IMG/VR virus record: IMGVR_UViG_3300044568_003163
Coordinates: 1-64,000 of that record
Reading direction: 5' to 3' (one strand)
Length of the DNA stretch: 64,000 nucleotides
Shown here: in pieces, positions 27,895 through 63,877 of the stretch
Position numbering within the stretch: the first letter of the stretch is position 1
Layout of the letters: each line of letters begins with the position of its first letter
The notes under the pieces: generated by a model
Seen by the model: only the letters and a program-made list of their open reading frames with translations
What the model was told of the DNA's origin: nothing
Databases searched by the model: none
Translations under genes and position numbers: made by a program

Positions 27895-30854
<2,960 letters not shown>

Positions 30855-30855
<1 letters not shown>

Positions 30856-31902: not shown

Positions 31903-32394
31903 TTATTTATCTTCGGAAAGATAAATCTTGCTGTACCAATCGAGTTTTAATTTTTCAATGTTACCATATTTGATTCCACATTCGTCAAAGATGTGAAGAT
32001 GTCCTTGTTCTCGGTAATCTTCTATCCAATAAACATATTTGAATCCCGAATTAACTAAGATTTTTGTACACATCTTACATGGAGAAAGAGTTAAGAGGAT
32101 GATGTAATTCTTTGGATCGAATTCTCGGAACTTAGCAATCATATTAACTTCGGCATGAATGAATCCGCTTTCACCTGGAATTAGGGAATCCTCTTCAGTT
32201 CCTGTTACTTCATTTATTGGTGCACCTTTGTAGGAGCCATTATAGCCAAAAGAAGCTATTTTTGTAAAGTTTTTGTGCAATGCCATACATGCAACTTTTT
32301 TAGTTGATGCATTAGATAATGTAGCTATTTGCTGAATCATACCAGCAAAGGTATCAATTTTAAAGTCTATTCTTTCTTGTGTCATTATTTCCAA
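31903..32394 (-). CDS. dCMP deaminase
   Basis: FGYNG, IHAEVNMI, TLSPCKMCTKIL zinc-deaminase motifs. Confidence 0.9.
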   Translation of the reverse strand: MEIMTQERIDFKIDTFAGMIQQIATLSNASTKKVACMALHKNFTKIASFGYNGSYKGAPINEVTGTEEDSLIPGESGFIHAEVNMIAKFREFDPKNYIILLTLSPCKMCTKILVNSGFKYVYWIEDYREQGHLHIFDECGIKYGNIEKLKLDWYSKIYLSEDK

Positions 32395-35104: not shown

Positions 35105-35665
35105 TTACATGTTGGCGTCTAGAACTTTTTTGAATGATTTAGCATCAGTAACTTCTTCTCCGTGCAATTCAATAGTTTCTCTATCCAAATTGATGTAGAT
35201 TTCTGAACCTTGATATTTCATATCTAAGATAATAGTGCTGTAGTTTTTTCCAATAGCTGTACCACCACTAATTCTTTTGCCTGCCTTTTCTGCCCATGTA
35301 GCAGCCTTTTTAACTAATGCAGTTGCATAGGAACCTTTACGTTTAGCAAATTCCATGATATTAGAAGGTACAGATGCAGCTTCATTAATTACAGATTCTT
35401 CTACTTTAAAAGTTTTGTTTCCTACTTTAACGGTTTTACCTATCAGATCATCAACACCATAAGGTTTTCCTAATTTGTCTTCGAAAGTTTGATCGTCTGA
35501 CCAATCATCAGGAGTTTGTAAAAGTTTTGCAATCACATCGGCTTTAGAAGACGATTCAGTTCTACCCCAGTTGTCGATAACCTCAGAGTAATAAACTATT
35601 TCGATTGCTCCTTCATTAACTGAAGATTCGTTAATGAATTCGTTGAATGTTTGTAAGTTTTTCAT
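35105..35665 (-). CDS. Putative internal head protein, two domains separated by an xNE site
   Basis: MKNLQTFNEFINESSVNE N-terminus; internal VEESVINE. Confidence 0.65.
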   Translation of the reverse strand: MKNLQTFNEFINESSVNEGAIEIVYYSEVIDNWGRTESSSKADVIAKLLQTPDDWSDDQTFEDKLGKPYGVDDLIGKTVKVGNKTFKVEESVINEAASVPSNIMEFAKRKGSYATALVKKAATWAEKAGKRISGGTAIGKNYSTIILDMKYQGSEIYINLDRETIELHGEEVTDAKSFKKVLDANM

Positions 35666-36054
35666 TATTGATCGATGAATTCTCCATTTAGGAATCTAAG
35701 TAGAATTTTATCAGTGGGTTGTACATTTAAGTTTCCGTTGATAAAAATCTCATAAGAATCATCAGCATATTTGCCGATGCCATAAAGCTCATTGGCTTTA
35801 GAGAATTTTTTATTTATATATTCATATGAGAACTTAATAATTCGCTGAGTTCTGACGTTATAAAATCCTAGAGTTCGGATATGTTCTCGGATTTCATTTT
35901 CATCGGCATTAAGAACCGATTGTGGACTAGGCCATTTGTCAAAAAATGAGTAAATTACCTTTCTAACATTTTTGTTGCCTGTTTGATTTAACATAATGCA
36001 ACCAATAAGCATTTTCCAGGGATCGTGTTGAAATTCTTGTTGAATAATTGCCAT
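35665..36054 (-). CDS. MBD4-like HhH-GPD DNA glycosylase
   Basis: DPWKMLIGCIMLNQT, LGFYNVR, HhH LYGIGKYADDSYEIF, and PTDK Asp at the MBD4 catalytic position. Confidence 0.85.
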   Translation of the reverse strand: MAIIQQEFQHDPWKMLIGCIMLNQTGNKNVRKVIYSFFDKWPSPQSVLNADENEIREHIRTLGFYNVRTQRIIKFSYEYINKKFSKANELYGIGKYADDSYEIFINGNLNVQPTDKILLRFLNGEFIDQ

Positions 36055-37233: not shown

Positions 37234-38379
37234 TTATTTTTTATTCATTTCAAAATCGATCATTTGTTTGATGGTTTCGTGTAATGATATTGTAATTCCT
37301 TTCCATTCTGGATAATCAGTTTTAAATTTAGTCAAATCTGAAATATACCAAATATGGTCACCAATTCGATTGTCTTCTAGAACTGTGAAGTCGTTCCAAT
37401 CTTTATGTTCTGGATTTATTTCTCTTAAGATAGAATTTGCCGAATCGATTGCTTCTAGAATCGAAGTTGAATTTTCTCTACCACCACCTGCATTATAGAC
37501 TGCACCAGGTATAGGGTTGTTATGATATTCTAAGAACATACTTACTAAGTCATCGGAATGGATATTATCTCTAACTTGTTTTCCTTTATAACCAAAGATG
37601 TTGTAATGTTTGTTGTTGACAATACACTTAATCAAATAAGCAAGAAATCCATGAAGTTCTGCACCTTGATGATTTGGTCCGGTTAAACAACCACCTCGAA
37701 ATACAACCGTATTCATACCAAAATATCTGCCATATTCTTGAACCATAATATCAGCAGCTACTTTAGAAGCACCAAAGATTGAATGTTTTGTATGGTCAAT
37801 CGACATAGTTTCGTCTACTTCTATTTGACGAGCAGATAGATTCGAAAGAGCTTCATAACGAGTTTCTTGTTCAACGATGTTTAATCGATTAGGAGTATCA
37901 CCATAAACTTTATTAGTTGATGTGAATATGAATGTAGCAGTTGGACAATATAAACGAGTAAGTTCTAACAGGTTCATTGTACCTATTGCATTTACTGAGA
38001 AGTCAGTCAAAGGTTCTTTTGCTGCCCAATCATGTGAAGGTTGTGCTGCAGTATGTACGATCATTTGAATATCATAAACTTCATGAGATTTGCCGAATAT
38101 TGTAAGTTCGCTATCTTCTAAAGTAAGGCCTTTGAAAATTGTTTCTAATGTTGCATAATCTCGAATATCGATAGACAATGGATTAAAGTTTGTTCCATAA
38201 TCTAATTTCATTTTATTTTCTGATTCTTTCGTAGAAGCATCTTCACCAAAGAAATAAGCTCGCATATCATTATCGATACCAACAACATAATAACCTTCAT
38301 TAATAAGACGTTTAACAGTTTGAGAACCTATCAAACCTGAAGATCCTGTAACAATTGCAGTTTTAACTTTATTTTGCAT
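37234..38379 (-). CDS. NAD-dependent NDP-sugar epimerase/dehydratase (CDP-tyvelose 2-epimerase-like extended SDR)
   Basis: VTGSSGLIG, HTAAQPSHD, FTSTNKVYGD, SIFGASKVAAD (catalytic Tyr position is Phe), FRGGCLTGPNHQGAELHGFL, GYKGKQVRDNIH, RIGDHIWYISD. Confidence 0.85.
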   Translation of the reverse strand: MQNKVKTAIVTGSSGLIGSQTVKRLINEGYYVVGIDNDMRAYFFGEDASTKESENKMKLDYGTNFNPLSIDIRDYATLETIFKGLTLEDSELTIFGKSHEVYDIQMIVHTAAQPSHDWAAKEPLTDFSVNAIGTMNLLELTRLYCPTATFIFTSTNKVYGDTPNRLNIVEQETRYEALSNLSARQIEVDETMSIDHTKHSIFGASKVAADIMVQEYGRYFGMNTVVFRGGCLTGPNHQGAELHGFLAYLIKCIVNNKHYNIFGYKGKQVRDNIHSDDLVSMFLEYHNNPIPGAVYNAGGGRENSTSILEAIDSANSILREINPEHKDWNDFTVLEDNRIGDHIWYISDLTKFKTDYPEWKGITISLHETIKQMIDFEMNKK

Positions 38380-38941
38380 TTTTTATAATTGAGTTTTTAA
38401 TTAAGAGTTTTTCGATTTCTACTATTGATTGTTCAATAGATTTTACAGATGAATCAATTTCGATAAATCGATTTTTCCATTTACCAGAATCCGAATGATT
38501 TTTGTAATAGTCATAATACCAATCGAACGAATCTTTTTGTTTAATAAAGTCGTTTTGAGAATAGATGATTCGATCTTTTGGTTTTCGTTCTACGTATTTT
38601 TCGTATGTAGTTGAAAGATAAATTATGGCAAAATTATTATCAAGGAGTAAATCACTTAATGAATCATCTTCTTTGATTAGAGATTTTCTTTCAAAGAATT
38701 TTGAGTAAACTAATTCAGAAAGAAAAGAACGATCTAAGATGAAAGTTTCTTCAGGAAATGCAGAGTACATCATATTAGCCATCACATGAATTCCGTGATA
38801 GAATTCATGTAAGTTTTCAATACATTCAGGCATTTTGTCTTTTACTGACATTTGACGGAATCCGTATTTTTTAGAAAGTATTTCTGCAATCGAAGATTTT
38901 CCTGTTCGAGAAAGTCCTTCAAGTATAATTAGTTTTGCCAT
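38369..38941 (-). CDS. dNMP (thymidylate-kinase-like) kinase
   Basis: IILEGLSRTGKSS P-loop and ILDRSFLSELVYS motif. Confidence 0.8.
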   Translation of the reverse strand: MAKLIILEGLSRTGKSSIAEILSKKYGFRQMSVKDKMPECIENLHEFYHGIHVMANMMYSAFPEETFILDRSFLSELVYSKFFERKSLIKEDDSLSDLLLDNNFAIIYLSTTYEKYVERKPKDRIIYSQNDFIKQKDSFDWYYDYYKNHSDSGKWKNRFIEIDSSVKSIEQSIVEIEKLLIKNSIIKNAK

Positions 38942-38963: not shown

Positions 38964-40253
38964 TTATTTGGTTAAGCAAGTGCGAATATCATTTACAATT
39001 CTATCACATGCAGACTCATATGATTCGTGGTCATATCCTACTTTGTGACATAATTCTCGCATTTGAGTTTCGCCGATAGTGCCAATCGTATGTAATGCAG
39101 TTCTTAATTGATATGCAACATCTTTTACGTCGGGTTTGTGAGTATTAACAGAATCAATTTTCGTGAAGTAAGGATATTCAGCATGACCAGCTTTTATCAT
39201 TTTGTGCAGGTAGTTATTTACTCGAGGAAATACTAAAATGTTTTTTGCCATCATAGCTTCGCAATGAGTTACACCACCATGAACTTCAGTAACAAATAAA
39301 TTACAAGCAATATGGGTTTTGTTGATAAACCTTAAATAATCTTCTCGAGTAAATTTTTCGTTATTTGGCATTACTTCGACGTGACCTTTTGATAAATCAT
39401 TAATCAATTGTAATTGTTCATCAGTTACTTTACGAGTAGGATTTAACATTACAGCTCTGAAAGGTTTGTCGGTGATAGTAGATAAAATTCCAATTGCTTC
39501 GGCAAATGAATCGTAATTAGTGTAACGATTTGCAGTATCTGAAATTCGATTACCAAAGTAAATTGTAGGAATTTCAAATTTTTCATCGTTATGGTATTTT
39601 GCAATTTCTGCATAATGAGCACCTACACCCCATACTGACTGAGGAGCAAGTATTTCTCGAGTTTTAAATAGAATATCATAAGCTTCCATTGCTTCTACTC
39701 TACCAGCTTCACATTGAAATGCAGCAATATCAGATGCAATAAAAGATTCCATTTGTCTTTCGTAATAACGAATTTTCTGCGGAACTTTATTTGCAATAGG
39801 AGAATCTAAGAAATAATTTGTAGAAATGATTTTCACTTCTTTGTTTCCAATAGTTTCAAATGCAACTCGCCAATTTTTTGTTAATGTGTTTTCGTCATTA
39901 ATCATTACATCGACATGAGGAAATCTTACAAGATTTGTTTGATGGTAATCGAAGTTGAAATTGTAACGAGAGGTCACAGGAGAAATAGGAATAATGTCTT
40001 CGTAAATTTGAATTGATGAATGATATTTCTCATCAAATAATTCGTAAATGTCGATCACATCATCGCAATGACCTGCAGGTGGTAATTTTACAATGAAATG
40101 GAATTCGTTAGGATTTTGTTCTAATATGGTTGAAATTATACCAACCGCAATATTAGTACATGCATCGTTTCTTAATAACCATTGAGGATAACCATTTCGA
40201 TTAGTGAAATTAGAAACTTGAATTGCATAAAAGATTGTTGTTTTTTTATTCAT
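38964..40253 (-). CDS. GT-B fold glycosyltransferase (GT4 / T4 alpha-gt-like)
   Basis: IYFGNRIS, REDYLRFI, TEVHGGVTHCEAM (GT4-like E...E motif). Start moved to ATG 40253. Confidence 0.65.
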   Translation of the reverse strand: MNKKTTIFYAIQVSNFTNRNGYPQWLLRNDACTNIAVGIISTILEQNPNEFHFIVKLPPAGHCDDVIDIYELFDEKYHSSIQIYEDIIPISPVTSRYNFNFDYHQTNLVRFPHVDVMINDENTLTKNWRVAFETIGNKEVKIISTNYFLDSPIANKVPQKIRYYERQMESFIASDIAAFQCEAGRVEAMEAYDILFKTREILAPQSVWGVGAHYAEIAKYHNDEKFEIPTIYFGNRISDTANRYTNYDSFAEAIGILSTITDKPFRAVMLNPTRKVTDEQLQLINDLSKGHVEVMPNNEKFTREDYLRFINKTHIACNLFVTEVHGGVTHCEAMMAKNILVFPRVNNYLHKMIKAGHAEYPYFTKIDSVNTHKPDVKDVAYQLRTALHTIGTIGETQMRELCHKVGYDHESYESACDRIVNDIRTCLTK

Positions 40254-40257
40254 TAAA

Positions 40258-40983
40258 TTACATTTTAGAATAGTTAATAGTAGAGTGTGGTAGGTTTTGT
40301 ATGTAATCAAAATCCTTTTTGAAAACGTGAGCAGAAACTACAGACGAAGAAAATTTACCTGGTTCAACTTCTAGTTTTTCTGCTAATTCGCAAGTAAATC
40401 GACCCCATAAGTACATATCAAGCTTAAGGACTTGTGCCATATTTTGAGATCGCATATGAACATGAACATTTAGCTTTTCATCTCGGATAAAGAAAGTAGC
40501 AGAATCGGTACATGGAAATTCTAAAGATTCGTTTTTATCTAAAAGATTAAGGTCATCTTTATCGAGAATCATAATGACTGCTCTTCGAGTATCAGGTTTA
40601 TCTCGCAATTCCTTTTCGATTGTAGGTAATTGTGATAAAATACGAGGACCATAGAAGGTATTGAAGTTTTCTGGAAGTTGGTCAGACTTTGGCTTTTCCA
40701 TAAACTTAGTGACGTTTGGATATTTGTCGATAATTTCGGTTGAGTCTGTGCAACCGTTCATCATCCAACGATAAAAGGTATCAGCATAATCATAGTCTAA
40801 TTTACCAATCAACTCGTTCGTAAATTGATAACTGGTTAAATCGAGTACATCATAACTCAATCCTGTAATTTCATGTACTTCACCAATGCGAGAAGTAGTT
40901 TGAAATTCAGGATTGTCTATAATATGCTGAGAAGTTTGTAAGAAAGCTTCTTCAAAAGTTTCAAATGTAGAATATTTGTGCAT
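40258..40983 (-). CDS. Thymidylate-synthase-fold enzyme with dCMP-type specificity residue (dCMP hydroxymethylase-like)
   Basis: YGPRI, PDTRRAVI, FPCT (catalytic Cys), HMRSQNMAQVLKLD with Asp at the E. coli TS Asn177-equivalent position, SAHVF. Confidence 0.8.
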   Translation of the reverse strand: MHKYSTFETFEEAFLQTSQHIIDNPEFQTTSRIGEVHEITGLSYDVLDLTSYQFTNELIGKLDYDYADTFYRWMMNGCTDSTEIIDKYPNVTKFMEKPKSDQLPENFNTFYGPRILSQLPTIEKELRDKPDTRRAVIMILDKDDLNLLDKNESLEFPCTDSATFFIRDEKLNVHVHMRSQNMAQVLKLDMYLWGRFTCELAEKLEVEPGKFSSSVVSAHVFKKDFDYIQNLPHSTINYSKM

Positions 40984-42224: not shown

Positions 42225-43034
42225 TTATTTTGGTGTCCAAATCTTTTGAACTTTTTTATTTATATATTCAATGAGTTCGCTGAAATTAGGATCTAACGCC
42301 TGAGAGTCGAATGATTCTTTATTTGTAGAAAACGAAATCTTACCGTAAACTTCTCGAGTATCTAAATATTGAGATATTCCAGCTTTTCGCAAAGAATCTG
42401 AAAATATAACATACTCATATCTACCAGAATTATCGTCATATATAATATTAGGTAAAACTTCGTTCTTAACAAAGTATGTACAATGTACTACTGGAACTTG
42501 GATTAGTCCTTTATATTTTTGATATAATAATGTAGAGTACATATCATCATTTTCGAAATATCCATTGGTATCTATTGATGAATGGAAATTTGAGTACATA
42601 GAGTTAGAATCTACTGAATGCAATAAAGGTGCTACTACTGGTAAATTAGTGGCCATTAGAGAATTGATAGTATGAGGTTTGATTATATTATCACAATCTG
42701 CGATAAAATAATCTGCCTTTTCGCTCATGGCAAATTGAATAGAGTCTTGTCTAATTGCTCCTAATATTTTAAATCGATGAGTATTCCAATCGTGATTTTC
42801 TACTAACTTTAGGCTTTCATCTATCGATGAATCATCAAATACCATTTTCCATTTCCATTTCCACTTATTGTACCAATCAAATAAAACATTAGCAGTATCG
42901 TCGTTATTGTCGTTTGTTCGAATATAAAATACCGAGTCCCATCCAAGAGCAGTCTGAGCTAACATACTATCTAAATACAATGGTAGTATATGGGCTTTTG
43001 ATTTTGCGATAATAGGAATTACTAATCTACTCAT
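42225..43034 (-). CDS. GT-A glycosyltransferase resembling the N-terminal domain of procollagen galactosyltransferase COLGALT1
   Basis: IIAKSKAHILPLYL, IRTNDNNDDTANVLFDW, IRQDSI, ADYFIADCDNII (DxD), LPVVAPLL, YSNFH, GYF, VPVVHCTYFV occur in the same order as recalled COLGALT1 motifs. Confidence 0.75.
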   Translation of the reverse strand: MSRLVIPIIAKSKAHILPLYLDSMLAQTALGWDSVFYIRTNDNNDDTANVLFDWYNKWKWKWKMVFDDSSIDESLKLVENHDWNTHRFKILGAIRQDSIQFAMSEKADYFIADCDNIIKPHTINSLMATNLPVVAPLLHSVDSNSMYSNFHSSIDTNGYFENDDMYSTLLYQKYKGLIQVPVVHCTYFVKNEVLPNIIYDDNSGRYEYVIFSDSLRKAGISQYLDTREVYGKISFSTNKESFDSQALDPNFSELIEYINKKVQKIWTPK

Positions 43035-43450
43035 ATATGTTCTAGAATTTCAAGGTGAGCTTTAATCATTCTAGGTCTAGCCATTTCAAACGGCATAAAA
43101 CCAGCCCAATCAACTTCTGCAGCTTGTAATTGAGACTTAGGTATGATTTCGGATTGTAAACCTATTTGGTCTAATGATTTAATAGGTACAATATAATAAG
43201 TTAACTTCTTCCAGGGTTTTCCTGTTTTAGTTTTGATATAAAATAGCTCCATTTCTGGACCAATCAAATTTCGAGGAACATCAATACCAATTTCCTCTTT
43301 AGTTTCTCTGATTGCTGCTTCTATATTAGTTTCACCGGCATCAACATGACCTTTAGGGATCGAATAGGTTCCATACCATCTTCCATTAGTTGGATGAACT
43401 AATAAAATTTGGTCTTTATAGATTATTGCTAATCCTGACGAATGTTCCAT
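43031..43450 (-). CDS. Nudix hydrolase
   Basis: GHVDAGETNIEAAIRETKEEIG Nudix box. Confidence 0.92.
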   Translation of the reverse strand: MEHSSGLAIIYKDQILLVHPTNGRWYGTYSIPKGHVDAGETNIEAAIRETKEEIGIDVPRNLIGPEMELFYIKTKTGKPWKKLTYYIVPIKSLDQIGLQSEIIPKSQLQAAEVDWAGFMPFEMARPRMIKAHLEILEHI

Positions 43451-45451: not shown

Positions 45452-45895
45452 TTACTCGTTTCTTGCTATGTCTCTTGACACATCTCTAGATTTAATTGTT
45501 TCTCGTTTATCATATTCTTTTTTACCTTTAGCTAGAAAGATTTCCATTTTGAAAAGTCCTCTTTCATTTTGAAATATTTTATAAGGTACAATTGAGTGGC
45601 CTTTGATGAGGTCCTTTTGTAGCTTTTTAAGTTCTTGTTTTCGCAGCAACAATTTGCGGTTGCAATCCGGTTCGTGACTATTAGGCGAATTCTTTGCAAC
45701 TGGAATATGAAGGCCTCTGACGTAAAGCTCATCATTCTCAAAAATACAATAAGTATCAGTAAGTCCAGCTAATCCTAGTCGAATAGATTTTACTTCACTG
45801 CCTTTTAATTGTATACCTGCAATTTCTGACCTCAATAAGTGATAATCAAATTTAGCTTTTCGATTGATGACGTTTACGTCTTTGACTTTTTTCAT
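45452..45895 (-). CDS. smpB: SsrA-binding protein SmpB
   Basis: NRKAKFDYHLL, AGIQLKGSEVKSIR, ELYVRGLHI, RKLLLRKQE, LAKGKKEYDKRETIK. Confidence 0.97.
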   Translation of the reverse strand: MKKVKDVNVINRKAKFDYHLLRSEIAGIQLKGSEVKSIRLGLAGLTDTYCIFENDELYVRGLHIPVAKNSPNSHEPDCNRKLLLRKQELKKLQKDLIKGHSIVPYKIFQNERGLFKMEIFLAKGKKEYDKRETIKSRDVSRDIARNE

Positions 45896-46368
45896 TATTT
45901 TAAAAATTTTCTAATTGATGAATTTAATCTCTCTAGATGTTCTTCATTTTGCAAACCAGCAAATTTCGTAACATTATCAGATATAAAAGGAATACAAATC
46001 TTTTTATTAAATACTTCTGCACCTATCCATTCAAGAATAGTGTCTAATTGAGTTATTCCTAAAATATTACCAAATGAGGTATTTGATGTACCTATTAGCA
46101 ATATGTTGGTTCCTTTAAGTGTTGATGGATATCCGGAATTATCTATCAATTGCTTAAACATATAAGGAAATGATCCGTTCCATTCAGGAACTATCATAAT
46201 GATATGTGTGAAATCTTTCATGTTAGGAATATCATCAGTAGCATTTGCTAAAGTAATAATACTTGTCGCACCTTTAAATATTTCGTATTGTATGAAAGAC
46301 TCACAACCTAAGGACAGCTTATAATTTAAGCCGTCCTTTGATGATTGTGTGAGTATGAGTATTTTCAT
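45895..46368 (-). CDS. NADPH-dependent FMN reductase (flavodoxin-like)
   Basis: IVPEWNGSFPYMFKQLID motif; TSNTSFGNILGITQL. Confidence 0.8.
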   Translation of the reverse strand: MKILILTQSSKDGLNYKLSLGCESFIQYEIFKGATSIITLANATDDIPNMKDFTHIIMIVPEWNGSFPYMFKQLIDNSGYPSTLKGTNILLIGTSNTSFGNILGITQLDTILEWIGAEVFNKKICIPFISDNVTKFAGLQNEEHLERLNSSIRKFLK

Positions 46369-52372: not shown

Positions 52373-55354
52373 ATGCCAACAGCAAATTACCCTAATAATC
52401 AAGATTATCGTTTAAATAAGACTCGTCCTCTTACATGGAAAGAAATGGACGATATGTTCAGAAAACCAAATATTTGGATTGGAGATTTTAGTTACGTTCA
52501 AGGAATGGTCGTGATGTGGGATGATTCAGTTCCACCAGTTAATAATGGAGATGATGGAACTTTATCTTTTTGGTTATGTGATTCCGATCACGTATCTTCC
52601 AATACTAATACTCCAGGAATATTAAATAGTCCATGGAGAAGAATAGGTGGATTAAGTGTTCCAGGACCTACAGGAGAATCGGGTGGTCCTATAGGACCTA
52701 CTGGAATGACCGGTGCTACTGGTAGAACTGGAATGACAGGTGCAACAGGTTCTACTGGAATGACTGGTGCGGTTGGACAAACTGGTGCTACTGGACAAAC
52801 TGGAATGACTGGTGCTGTTGGACCTACCGGAGTTGGTTTACCCGGATCTAAAGGTGATACTGGAAATATTGGTGCTACAGGAATGACTGGGTTAGTAGGA
52901 CCAACTGGAGCAGGAGTAACTGGTGCTACTGGACAAACTGGACAAACTGGACCTACCGGTTTCAACGGACAAACTGGTCCTACAGGAATGACTGGTGCAG
53001 GAGAAACCGGTGCTACAGGAATGACAGGAATGACAGGTGCTACTGGAATGACAGGACCTATAGGACCTACTGGTGCAAATGGAATCCCGATGGGTAAACC
53101 ATCTGATGCATTAGATATGTATTACGATGATGATCCGTCTTCACAAGGTTGTAATCCTGGTGATCCGCTCAAACTATCGTTTGATGTAGTACGAACTGGA
53201 GTTACTTCACTTGCATATGTAGTAGATAATTCCGGTATTTCGACTGCAGGAGGTACAAAAATATTAATACAAAAAGAAGGAAATTATTTTATATCGGTAA
53301 ATGTTAATATAAAAATTCTAACTCCGGTCGACGGTAGAGCCGAAGTTTCTTTAAATTTATATTATGATGATACCTCTGGAAGCTATACTAAATTCGACGG
53401 ATTTCAAGGAAATGTTATATTAGATGCAGAAGGTTTAACTCCAACTGGAACATTAAAAGATTCTATTATGATTCAAGGAATTTTTAATGTAGATGCTAGT
53501 TGGATTTCTTCAAACAGAAAAATATATGCCGTATTAGAAAATGCTGCAGCAGGAATTTCTCTTTCATCCATCGTCGTATCACCTATTTCTACTTCATTAT
53601 CTATCATCTCGTTAGAAGGTGGAATTGGTGCTACTGGAGCAGGAGTTGCTGGACAAACTGGTGCTACTGGTATGACTGGATTAGTTGGACCAACTGGAGC
53701 AGGTCAAACTGGTGCTACTGGACAAACTGGTGCTACCGGAGAAACTGGAATGACAGGTGCTACTGGAATGACTGGTCCTACTGGTGCTGGACAAACTGGT
53801 GCTACCGGAATGACTGGTCCTACTGGTCTAGGGTACGATCTTACTTCTTCAATATCTGCTACTGCTGGATTAGGGGTAAAAGTTTTTACCGTAAATAAAG
53901 ATGCATCTCTTTCTGCATTTTCCATTGGAAACCGAGTAAGAGTAAGTTCATCTTTCGTAATTTGGATGGAGGGAGAGATAACATCATATGCAGGAAATAC
54001 CTTAATTGTGAATGTTGATAAAGTAGTTGGTAGTGGTGCTTCTGCGAGTAGTTGGGATATCGACATTGCTGGACTTCCTGGACCTACTGGAATGACTGGA
54101 ATGACTGGTGCTACTGGAAGAACTGGTAGTACAGGAATGACTGGTGCTACTGGAAGAACTGGTAGTACAGGAATGACTGGAGCTCAAGGTCCTATCGGAC
54201 CAGCAGGACCATTTGGTGCTACTGGTATGACTGGATTAGTTGGACCAACTGGATCAGGCACTACATTTATTCATGAAACTGCTACTTTCGTAGATCCTAA
54301 CGGTAGCAACAGTACTGGTGCAGTAGGAGATAAACAAAAACCATTTTTGACGATAGAAGAAGCAATAGGTCAAGCTCGTTCACGAGCAAACGAACAAGGC
54401 GGACCATTTACTATCATCGTATATCCGGGTATTTATGAGGAAAACAAGCAATGGAATTTTGAAAACGACGAAGGAACTATTAAATTTATCGGTCAAGTTT
54501 ATATAGAATTTGATAACCCAAACCCGGTAGATTATTTTATCAAAATGAGTAATTCGTATATTAATTTCGTTGGAGATGACCGAGGGACGAATAATTTCCA
54601 AATTGGCGGTACTTGTAATACTGGAACATATTTAACCATATCTAGTAAATTCGGTACTAATGTGTATTTATTCGATGTTCGAAATACTAAACTTAAACTA
54701 TCAAATATTACAATAGATACAGGATTTTTAGGAAAATTTGGAGTAGATTGGAAATACCCCGGTGGTGGTAGTAAAGTAGATATTGATAATTGTAGAATGA
54801 GATCTATTATACATCCTAATATCGAGGTTTCTGCCGACGGCGCAGTTGATGGTCTTTCTAGATTACCAGATATATTAATTAGAGATTCAATTCTAGCATC
54901 GGCTTTTGGACCTAATATTGGATATTATGCATTTACTAATGGTTTAGAATCTGAAGCTACTTTATTGATTGATAATAGCACAATCTATCAAGATCCTACC
55001 TATGGAGGTTTAGGTAAATTAACACCTGGATTTCCAACTCCAGTAGGAGGAAAATTACCTCACGTAGACAGTTTCATATATTCAACGATGAATCTGGATA
55101 ACCAATTAAGGTTGATATTTTCTGGGACGAAATTCCATATGAACAAATGGTCTCCACCAGCAGAAGGAAGTGGTGGACCTGAAGCTTGCGTACATTTTGA
55201 TAATTCTGGAAATGATTTCAAACATGACACGATGTCAACTTACACTAATACTCGAAATTTTTTAGGAGCCAGCATCTGGACTCATGTAGTTGACCATATA
55301 ACGGAGTTAAAAGGTAGTACGAAATCTCCAATTGAATATATGAACATACTTTAA
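52373..55354 (+). CDS. Collagen-like fibre protein II (G-X-T repeats, C1q-like domain, C-terminal parallel beta-helix)
   Basis: N-terminus paralogous to fibre I ([26 protein letters not shown]); collagen runs; [11 protein letters not shown]...[10 protein letters not shown]...[10 protein letters not shown] beta-helix cap motif. Confidence 0.85.
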
Positions 55355-55824
55355 CCTCTTCGTTTATTATTTCTCTTAATTAAATGGGCATACGACCAAA
55401 TACCTTCATTGGTAAAATTAGTTGGTGCCCATTTGTTCATATCTAATGAAATCCACTCTTCGGTGCCGTCTTTGTTATTTGCAATATACATATGGATTTC
55501 GTCAACTAAAGACTCGAATTGTTTAAATAGAGAGGTGCCACCTAAAACATAAATTGGTCCTTCTGTGTGCAAGTGTAAATCATCCGTATCATGAATTACG
55601 TTTACATTCATTCGCTTCCATTTTCTATTTCTGGTAATCACCCACGTATTACCACCTTTCCATTTAGTAATATCATAGGTTTTTCTTCCAATCAAACATA
55701 CCTCTTTCTTGAGTAAATCTCTAATCAAACATTCATGATGCCAAATCCTTAATCCAAGGTCTGGTACAGTATTTGATTGGTTATCTACTATTGCAACAAA
55801 TATGATTTTTTGATTGTGTAGCAT
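55351..55824 (-). CDS. Divergent dihydrofolate reductase-like protein
   Basis: [27 protein letters not shown]...DEIHM; the N-terminal IG..N.LPW motif is absent. Confidence 0.65.
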
Positions 55825-63535: not shown

Positions 63536-63592
63536 ATCGAAGGTATATTAGGCCATACCAATAACCAGGACCTTTTCCCTAGGGAAATGTCG

Positions 63593-63675
63593 TGACCAAA
63601 GAGGGACTCGAACCCTCACGCTCAAAGAGCACCAGCTTCTTAGACTGGCGTGTCTACCAATTCCACCACTCGGCC
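63593..63675 (-). tRNA. tRNA-Leu(AAG), type II, no encoded CCA
   Basis: GGCCGAG/TTTGGTC-A acceptor, Leu-type D arm GTGGAATTGGTAGACAC, CCAGT-CTAAGAA-GCTGG anticodon arm, GCTC-TTT-GAGC variable arm, GAGGG-TTCGAGT-CCCTC T arm. Confidence 0.85.
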
Positions 63676-63679
63676 GTAA

Positions 63680-63800
63680 TGAGCAATCCTATGGAATTAC
63701 TGCAGTTTATCCAAAGGTCGTATATAGCTTGCAGACTAAGATTCTGCTGGATTTTCACCTTCATAAAGCTGGATATCAACGACCCTTATCGCGATTCTCA
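63680..63800 (-). ncRNA. Candidate structured RNA between the two tRNAs
   Basis: Nested complementary segments: TGAGAATC/GATTGCTCA, AAGGGTCGT/ACGACCTTT, AGCT/AGCT, GCAGA/TCTGC. Confidence 0.35.
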
Positions 63801-63803
63801 TTG

Positions 63804-63877
63804 TACCCGAGATGGGACTCGAACCCACACTGTACAGGGTTTAAGTCTGATGCCTCTTCCAATTGGGCTACCCGGGC
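63804..63877 (-). tRNA. tRNA-Leu(TAA) with short variable loop and imperfect anticodon stem
   Basis: GCCCGGG/CTCGGGT-A acceptor, TCAGA-CTTAAAC-CCTGT anticodon arm, 5-nt variable loop, GTGGG-TTCGAGT-CCCAT T arm. Confidence 0.75.

Follow-up and report, generated by a model that had tools for sequence, protein, structure and literature searches.

Enzymes that hydroxylate C5 of dCMP on a thymidylate synthase (TS) fold have recently been described in phages. The gp48 protein of RB69 and gp80 of DLP3 convert dCMP to 5-hydroxy-dCMP (5hodCMP), as reported by Lee et al. (NAR 2026, PMC13326640); FMN co-purifies with these enzymes and 18O2 labelling showed that the oxygen of the product comes from O2 (PMC13326640). 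The same authors proposed Asn at ThyA position 169 as diagnostic for 5hodCMP synthases, and nine out of nine diverse D169N homologues made 5hodC, including IMG/VR sequences and those of Shewanella phage Thanatos and Rhizobium phage RL38J1 (PMC13326640). Synthase, glycosyltransferase (GT) and kinase genes follow one another in DLP3 (gp80-79-78), RB69 (gp48-46:47-45) and RL38J1 (gp216-215-214) (PMC13326640). For the enzyme of Escherichia coli phage HY126, a crystal structure with flavin and an in vitro reconstitution are attributed to He et al. (Nat Chem Biol 2026) where that work is cited in PMC13326640. The hydroxylase chemistry was already published in 2025–2026, and the gene described below is a new member of this family that brings no new chemistry; what is possibly new is its setting, a marine Bacteroidota-type jumbo-phage lineage whose sugar genes are not those of the arabinose route and which encodes a candidate reductase.

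The stretch analysed here (the window, 64,000 nt) corresponds to the initial 64 kb of a metagenome-derived viral record of 294 kb with 33 % GC. At 40258..40983 on the minus strand it carries a gene for a protein of 241 aa with an ATG start, which we annotate as a candidate dCMP 5-hydroxylase (5hodCMP synthase, AfhB-type, TS fold). Megablast of the 10 kb around this gene against the phage collection returned no match. At the protein level, PF00303 (Thymidylat_synt) matched the C-terminal half only (E = 2.6e-10) and phrog_160, ‘thymidylate synthase’, covered the full length (E = 1.4e-34). The nearest solved structures by sequence were those of AfhB from HY126 (9iqu/9iqc/9ir2, E = 1.4e-72), with far weaker matches to MilA (5e-10) and T4 gp42 (9e-7); in the Foldseek library, 9iqc and 9iqu bear the titles ‘phage HY126 dCMP hydroxylase-AfhB with substrate dCMP’ and ‘Monooxygenase dependent on riboflavin with dCMP and FAD’. 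When the window protein was modelled with AlphaFold2 (pLDDT 92.5), the model superposed on 9iqc/9iqu with TM of 0.91/0.94, an rmsd of 1.2 Å and 49 % identity, and AfhB has the same fold, length and RSQN...V...D block. Identity was 48 % to RB69 gp48, 51 % to the Bp7 protein and 47 % to the DLP1 orthologue of DLP3 gp80. We consider it very likely that the gene specifies a flavin-dependent dCMP 5-hydroxylase of the AfhB family, acting within a putative DNA-glycosylation module.

Residue equivalences were obtained from an alignment with E. coli ThyA, T4 gp42 and phage homologues, as well as from a larger, ThyA-numbered MAFFT alignment. The catalytic ‘PC’ cysteine is retained (C158, equivalent to ThyA C146), as are the phosphate-binding Arg pair (R133/R134, equivalent to R126/R127) and R178/S179 (R166/S167), and C158, R133, R134, R178 and S179 are all invariant in the hydroxylase clade. 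The motif R178-S179-Q180-N181-M182-A183-Q184-V185-L186-K187-L188-D189 aligns with ThyA R166-S167-C168-D169...G173...N177, placing Q180 at C168, N181 at D169, V185 at G173 and D189 at N177, the cytosine-specificity site. A preliminary description of this DNA had read D169 as replaced by Asn, G173 by Val and N177 by Asp, with the PC cysteine and the RR pair kept, and the alignment to E. coli ThyA reproduces that reading exactly. Further changes, beyond those it listed, were found at ThyA E58 (Phe), W80 (Val) and L143 (Glu, E155), and H147 is Thr. The changes at 58, 80 and 143 co-vary with Asn169 and non-Gly173 across the hydroxylase clade; positions 58, 80, 169 and 173 we take to have a role in folate contact. 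Q168, N169, V/I/L173, D177, E143 and C146 were present in 120 of the 120 nearest database homologues (65–100 % identity), and such a shared signature argues for a selected pattern, neither chance nor decay. At all 18 positions checked, moreover, the signature is identical to that of RB69 gp48 and of the DLP1 orthologue. ThyA positions 58, 80, 169 and 173 are all listed as lying within 6 Å of the C5 of dUMP (Lee et al., PMC13326640).

Pfam and NCBIfam name the protein a thymidylate synthase, and JGI names its homologues likewise, from which one might suppose an ordinary or back-up enzyme of that kind. Its NCBIfam scores of 20–50 bits are, however, far under every equivalog cutoff (108–405), Asp stands in place of Asn177, and the ThyA-type residues at 58, 80, 169 and 173 are missing. 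A canonical ThyA of 425 aa is also encoded elsewhere in the genome, outside the window (G000:C1:189737-191014), which carries three insertions of roughly 54, 24 and 64 residues and keeps E58, W80, L143, H147, D169, G173 and N177 together with all catalytic residues. A thymidylate synthase function for the window protein is as such extremely improbable. The preliminary description had also named the DHFR-like gene at 55351-55824 as a potential partner of the TS homologue, a proposal that we discard, since the canonical ThyA accounts for DHFR without any link to the hydroxylase, and since the hydroxylase no longer has residues that the preliminary description and Lee et al. connect with folate contact. 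ThyA and DHFR, together with the MazG pyrophosphatase encoded in the 294-kb genome and a peripheral dCMP deaminase for general pyrimidine pool management (31903..32394, minus strand; PF00383, E = 1.5e-13), account for the routine making of dTMP and handling of dCTP.

When 1.84 billion representative proteins were searched exhaustively with the hydroxylase, 2374 matches resulted, and the signature was scored in the best 150 of these, where it proved bimodal. In 89 hydroxylase-type rows, position 58 is not Glu but mostly Phe, position 80 holds a small residue, and Glu143, Asn169 (Ser, Cys or Asp in a few), V/T/I/L173 and Asp177 complete the pattern. A further 49 rows resemble T4 gp42, with Glu at 58 (Asp in one), usually an aromatic residue at 80, Asp at 143 (Glu in one), Asp169, Gly173 and Asp177. 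All 49 hydroxymethylase-type relatives thus keep Asp169 and Gly173, and the conservation of both residues in hydroxymethylases, as it had previously been asserted, is borne out. A phylogeny against gp42 had likewise been called for; in the maximum-likelihood tree that we built, a single branch (SH-aLRT 100, length 0.63) separates the hydroxylase-signature group from the hydroxymethylase types, and the window protein falls in a 99 %-supported subclade of 16 rows with RB69 gp48, Bp7 and DLP1. Within the hydroxylase clade, the replacements at 58, 80, 169 and 173 thus occur in concert.

These data bear directly on whether the protein could instead be a folate-dependent dCMP hydroxymethylase like T4 gp42. 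The two have in common, along with MilA, the TS fold, the catalytic Cys, Asp177 and an acidic residue at 143, and many GenBank phage records label homologues ‘dCMP hydroxymethylase’ or ‘deoxycytidylate 5-hydroxymethyltransferase’. T4 gp42 and MilA (a CMP hydroxymethylase), however, use CH2-THF and keep E58, D169 and G173, which are replaced by F, N and V in the window protein. Moreover, E/D58, D169 and G173 are kept in every one of the 49 hydroxymethylase-type rows, compared with F58, V80, N169 and V173 here; the fully supported branch lies between the window protein and that group, identity to gp42 is only 20 %, and homologues with the signature of the window protein make 5hodC rather than 5hmdC (PMC13326640). 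We therefore regard a hydroxymethylase as very unlikely.

Non-Glu58, a non-aromatic residue at 80, Glu143, Asn169, non-Gly173 and Asp177 cleanly split the two chemistries in 138 representative sequences, and since hydroxylase genes carry the wrong label of thymidylate synthase or dCMP hydroxymethylase in annotations, these co-varying positions could be used to re-annotate them. A minority of the clade has Ser, Cys or Asp at 169 whilst keeping Phe58 and non-Gly173 (P0263, P0264, P0280, P0283, P0292, P0296, P0305-P0307, P0317, P0356 and P0383), so that the rule leading from signature to function is incompletely mapped; Asn169 alone may miss part of the clade, or those members may differ in activity. 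Natural fusions of hydroxylase-type TS domains were also observed, to a histidine phosphatase in four representatives and to MazG in one (P0242, P0244, P0245, P0250 and P0309). The cluster of Tenacibaculum phage PTm1 contains a guanylyltransferase-like gene and, directly upstream of the hydroxylase, a histidine phosphatase gene of its own; the latter arrangement, together with the fusions, suggests a functional link with the processing of sugar-phosphates or dCTP.

That the enzyme would perform non-standard chemistry at C5, for example folate-independent hydroxylation with flavin and O2, had been put forward in the preliminary description, and the close homology to characterised enzymes lends this support. 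Fold, active-site signature, clade membership and gene neighbourhood are established by the present analysis, whereas from these relatives we infer flavin use, the identity of the product, its glycosylation and the biological role of the module, which may be pictured as follows. In a TS-fold enzyme with a remodelled folate site, Cys158 would attack C6 of dCMP, with Asp189 selecting cytosine, by analogy with the characterised homologues, and the activated C5 would take an O2-derived oxygen via reduced flavin. The TMPK-like kinase described below and host kinases would then carry 5-hydroxy-dCMP to the triphosphate, which the phage polymerase would incorporate. On the DNA, the 5-hydroxyl would be glycosylated by the GT-B enzyme, and probably by a GT-A-like enzyme also, using a host NDP-sugar tailored by an SDR, and the resulting DNA would be resistant to host nucleases.

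Downstream of the hydroxylase, and on the same strand, the gene order is GT-B, kinase and sugar SDR, so that the synthase-GT-kinase succession of DLP3, RB69 and RL38J1 recurs here. The first of these genes (38964..40253, minus strand) specifies a GT-B fold glycosyltransferase of 429 aa which, by fold and position, is the candidate first DNA glycosyltransferase on 5-hydroxycytosine; the ORF called by the program runs to 40310 from a TTG, but the ATG at 40253 is the likely start. No Pfam, PHROG or NCBIfam match was found for this protein, and none of its more than 160 homologues has a Pfam domain. Its AF2 model (pLDDT 91.2, pTM 0.91) retrieved with Foldseek the retaining GT4-type enzymes MshA (3c4q) and BshA (3mbo/6n1x), sucrose-phosphate synthase and glycogen synthase (E-values of 1e-13 to 1e-10), and comparable templates are given for DLP3 gp79 and RB69 gp46:47 (Lee et al., PMC13326640). 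An E323-x8-E332 block is invariant, and the position of the gene matches that of GT1 in the DLP3, RB69 and RL38J1 clusters. Neither BLASTP nor hhalign detected homology to DLP1_077 or PAU gp183. Lacking sequence or profile similarity to known GT1 proteins, the GT-B protein is best regarded as a positional and fold analogue rather than a demonstrated orthologue, and glycosylation of 5-hydroxycytosine is predicted from its position and fold, as no GT1 homology is detectable.

The second gene (38369..38941, minus strand) encodes a TMPK-like nucleotide kinase (phrog_761, E = 1.2e-16; weak PF02223) with homology to DLP1_076 (E = 2e-10) and RB69 gp45 (E = 2e-5), the kinases of the corresponding clusters. 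As no T4 gp1-type dNMP kinase was found in the 294-kb genome, the cluster kinase is the best candidate for phosphorylation of 5hodCMP. Hence the window hydroxylase resembles RB69 gp48 and DLP3 gp80 in its subclade and in its adjacent kinase family, and differs from these systems in that the neighbouring GT has no detectable sequence homology and the phage has no gp1-type kinase. The kinase also bears on a further possibility, that of an enzyme within the hydroxylase clade acting on another substrate or yielding another product (CMP, dUMP or some other flavin-mediated C5 modification). In its favour are the size and diversity of the clade, some variation at 169, sugar genes in the window cluster that differ from those of every characterised case, and MilA, which illustrates that ribo/deoxy preference can shift within the TS fold. 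We nevertheless hold such a departure to be unlikely, because the window protein sits in a tight subclade with RB69 gp48, with every signature position in common, and the adjoining kinase is homologous to kinases of verified dCMP pathways.

The third gene (37234..38379, minus strand) specifies an NAD-dependent SDR of the NDP-sugar epimerase/dehydratase type (PF01370, E = 3e-35), predicted to tailor the sugar donor. CDP-tyvelose 2-epimerase (1orr, E = 4e-29) is its best solved relative; it scores under every NCBIfam equivalog cutoff, and it holds the orthologous position in relatives. Upstream of the hydroxylase, a candidate second glycosyltransferase (42225..43034, minus strand; GT-A/GT2_4-like) had no direct family match in Pfam, PHROG or NCBIfam and was recognised through an orthologue in the relative L014, to which it is 62 % identical (E = 1e-122) and which carries PF13704 (Glyco_tranf_2_4). 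Between the ligase gene and this GT-A-like gene lies a NUDIX hydrolase gene (43031..43450, minus strand; PF00293, E = 5e-14), which L014 and L020 share but some relatives lack, and whose product is possibly a nucleotide or NDP-sugar pyrophosphatase.

HY126 is a member of the Straboviridae with an arabinofuranose pathway (AfhE/AfhF), whereas the window belongs to a jumbo phage of 294 kb whose set of sugar genes is built around an SDR. An arabinose pathway was considered for the latter and is ruled out, as neither a SIS isomerase nor a sugar nucleotidyltransferase was found in the 294-kb genome; the sugar probably comes from an NDP-hexose of the host after modification by the SDR. The signature and the synthase-GT-kinase triad of the window phage are also those of RL38J1 (gp216) and other Pootjesviridae, which have hexosylated 5hoC, and by analogy with RL38J1 a hexose-type rather than an arabinose-type decoration is plausible. 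The enzyme of Atu_ph04, a relative of the RL38J1 group, is only 31–32 % identical to the window hydroxylase and belongs to a different subclade. Amongst close relatives of the window phage the downstream sugar genes vary, and include a hexapeptide acyltransferase, a PIG-L deacetylase, a GT2 and extra SDRs. The hydroxylase module therefore pairs with differing sugar-tailoring genes, and the DNA of such phages is probably hypermodified, with consequences for sequencing, restriction and studies of defence systems.

Further downstream, at 35665..36054 on the minus strand, a gene for a 129-aa HhH-GPD DNA glycosylase of the MBD4 type was identified (PDB MBD4 glycosylase domains 3iho/4dk9, E of about 1e-26), in which the Asp aligned to the GND of MBD4 is kept. 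MBD4 is a G:T/G:U mismatch glycosylase, and the phage protein might serve in the repair of deaminated modified cytosines. Relatives likewise have a 129-aa HhH-GPD gene downstream of this cluster, an observation of association only.

A stand-alone FMN reductase was also proposed beforehand as a partner of the TS homologue. The gene is real: at 45895..46368 (minus strand) it specifies an FMN_red-family flavodoxin-fold protein, a putative NAD(P)H:flavin reductase (PF03358, 26.7 bits, cutoff 24), whose PEWNGSFP...K..ID motif aligns with FMN reductase 3u7r and whose Atlas look-alikes are Bacteroidota NADPH-dependent FMN reductases. Its position is conserved in the lineage: each relative inspected has it 2–5 kb upstream of the hydroxylase, within a block that reads DHFR ... 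guanylate kinase, unknown, FMN_red, SmpB, ligase ... hydroxylase, GT, SDR, kinase. The order is still kept in a Tara Oceans scaffold whose FMN_red is only 41 % identical, and many of the 78 FMN_red homologues lie on contigs whose lengths match those of contigs with hydroxylase or GT homologues. As all of this synteny falls within one lineage, however, it does not amount to independent evidence of coupling. The gene is absent from six hydroxylase-type phages (RB69, Bp7, DLP1, Atu_ph04, PAU and PTm1) and from LR756500, a huge phage with a hydroxymethylase-type copy; no homologue occurred among 50,697 phage records, and no hydroxylase-reductase fusion was seen, the natural fusions being those to histidine phosphatase and MazG. 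An obligatory partnership is thus out, and the part of the earlier proposal that stands is a lineage-specific gene near the hydroxylase, at best an optional helper and candidate partner. A dedicated reductase would make chemical sense, given that a flavin monooxygenase needs reduced flavin.

More speculatively, the hydroxylase and its own NAD(P)H:FMN reductase might form a self-contained two-component monooxygenase, with the non-homologous GT-B and the tyvelose-epimerase-like SDR installing a sugar unlike the described arabinose, galactose and glucose forms, and the MBD4-like glycosylase policing deaminated modified cytosines; we offer this combination tentatively and hold it to be rather doubtful.

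A second FMN_red/flavodoxin-like gene, of 247 aa, lies outside the window (G000:C1:112778-113521; PF03358, 30 bits). A 149-aa ORF adjoining the FMN_red gene gave no informative match. Here, as in relatives too, the FMN_red gene adjoins one for an SmpB homologue, a tmRNA-binding protein (45452-45895, minus strand; PF01668, E = 5e-43); no tmRNA gene was found in the 64-kb window.

With regard to lineage, a 1194-aa virion protein connects the phage with Sphingomonas phage PAU, with jumbo phages of Tenacibaculum, Chryseobacterium and Flavobacterium, and with huge phages from metagenomes. Hydroxylase-type copies are present in PAU and PTm1. In the tree the window hydroxylase is nearer to the Straboviridae enzymes than to that of PAU, which suggests that the module has moved between phage lineages. 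The PAU locus itself (gp182-gp187, L009) comprises a hydroxylase-type TS homologue, two unknown genes and then 4,6-dehydratase, 3,5-epimerase and thymidylyltransferase genes of the dTDP-rhamnose type, which hints at a 6-deoxyhexose on 5-hydroxycytosine in a cultured phage.

Elsewhere in the window we noted two large tail-fibre genes with collagen-like repeats, at 27895-30855 (minus strand) and 52373-55354 (plus strand). The latter is the sole large plus-strand gene of the window and coincides with a GC-richer patch (0.39 vs about 0.32). Two tRNA-Leu genes, with anticodons AAG and TAA, lie at 63592-63877 on the minus strand.
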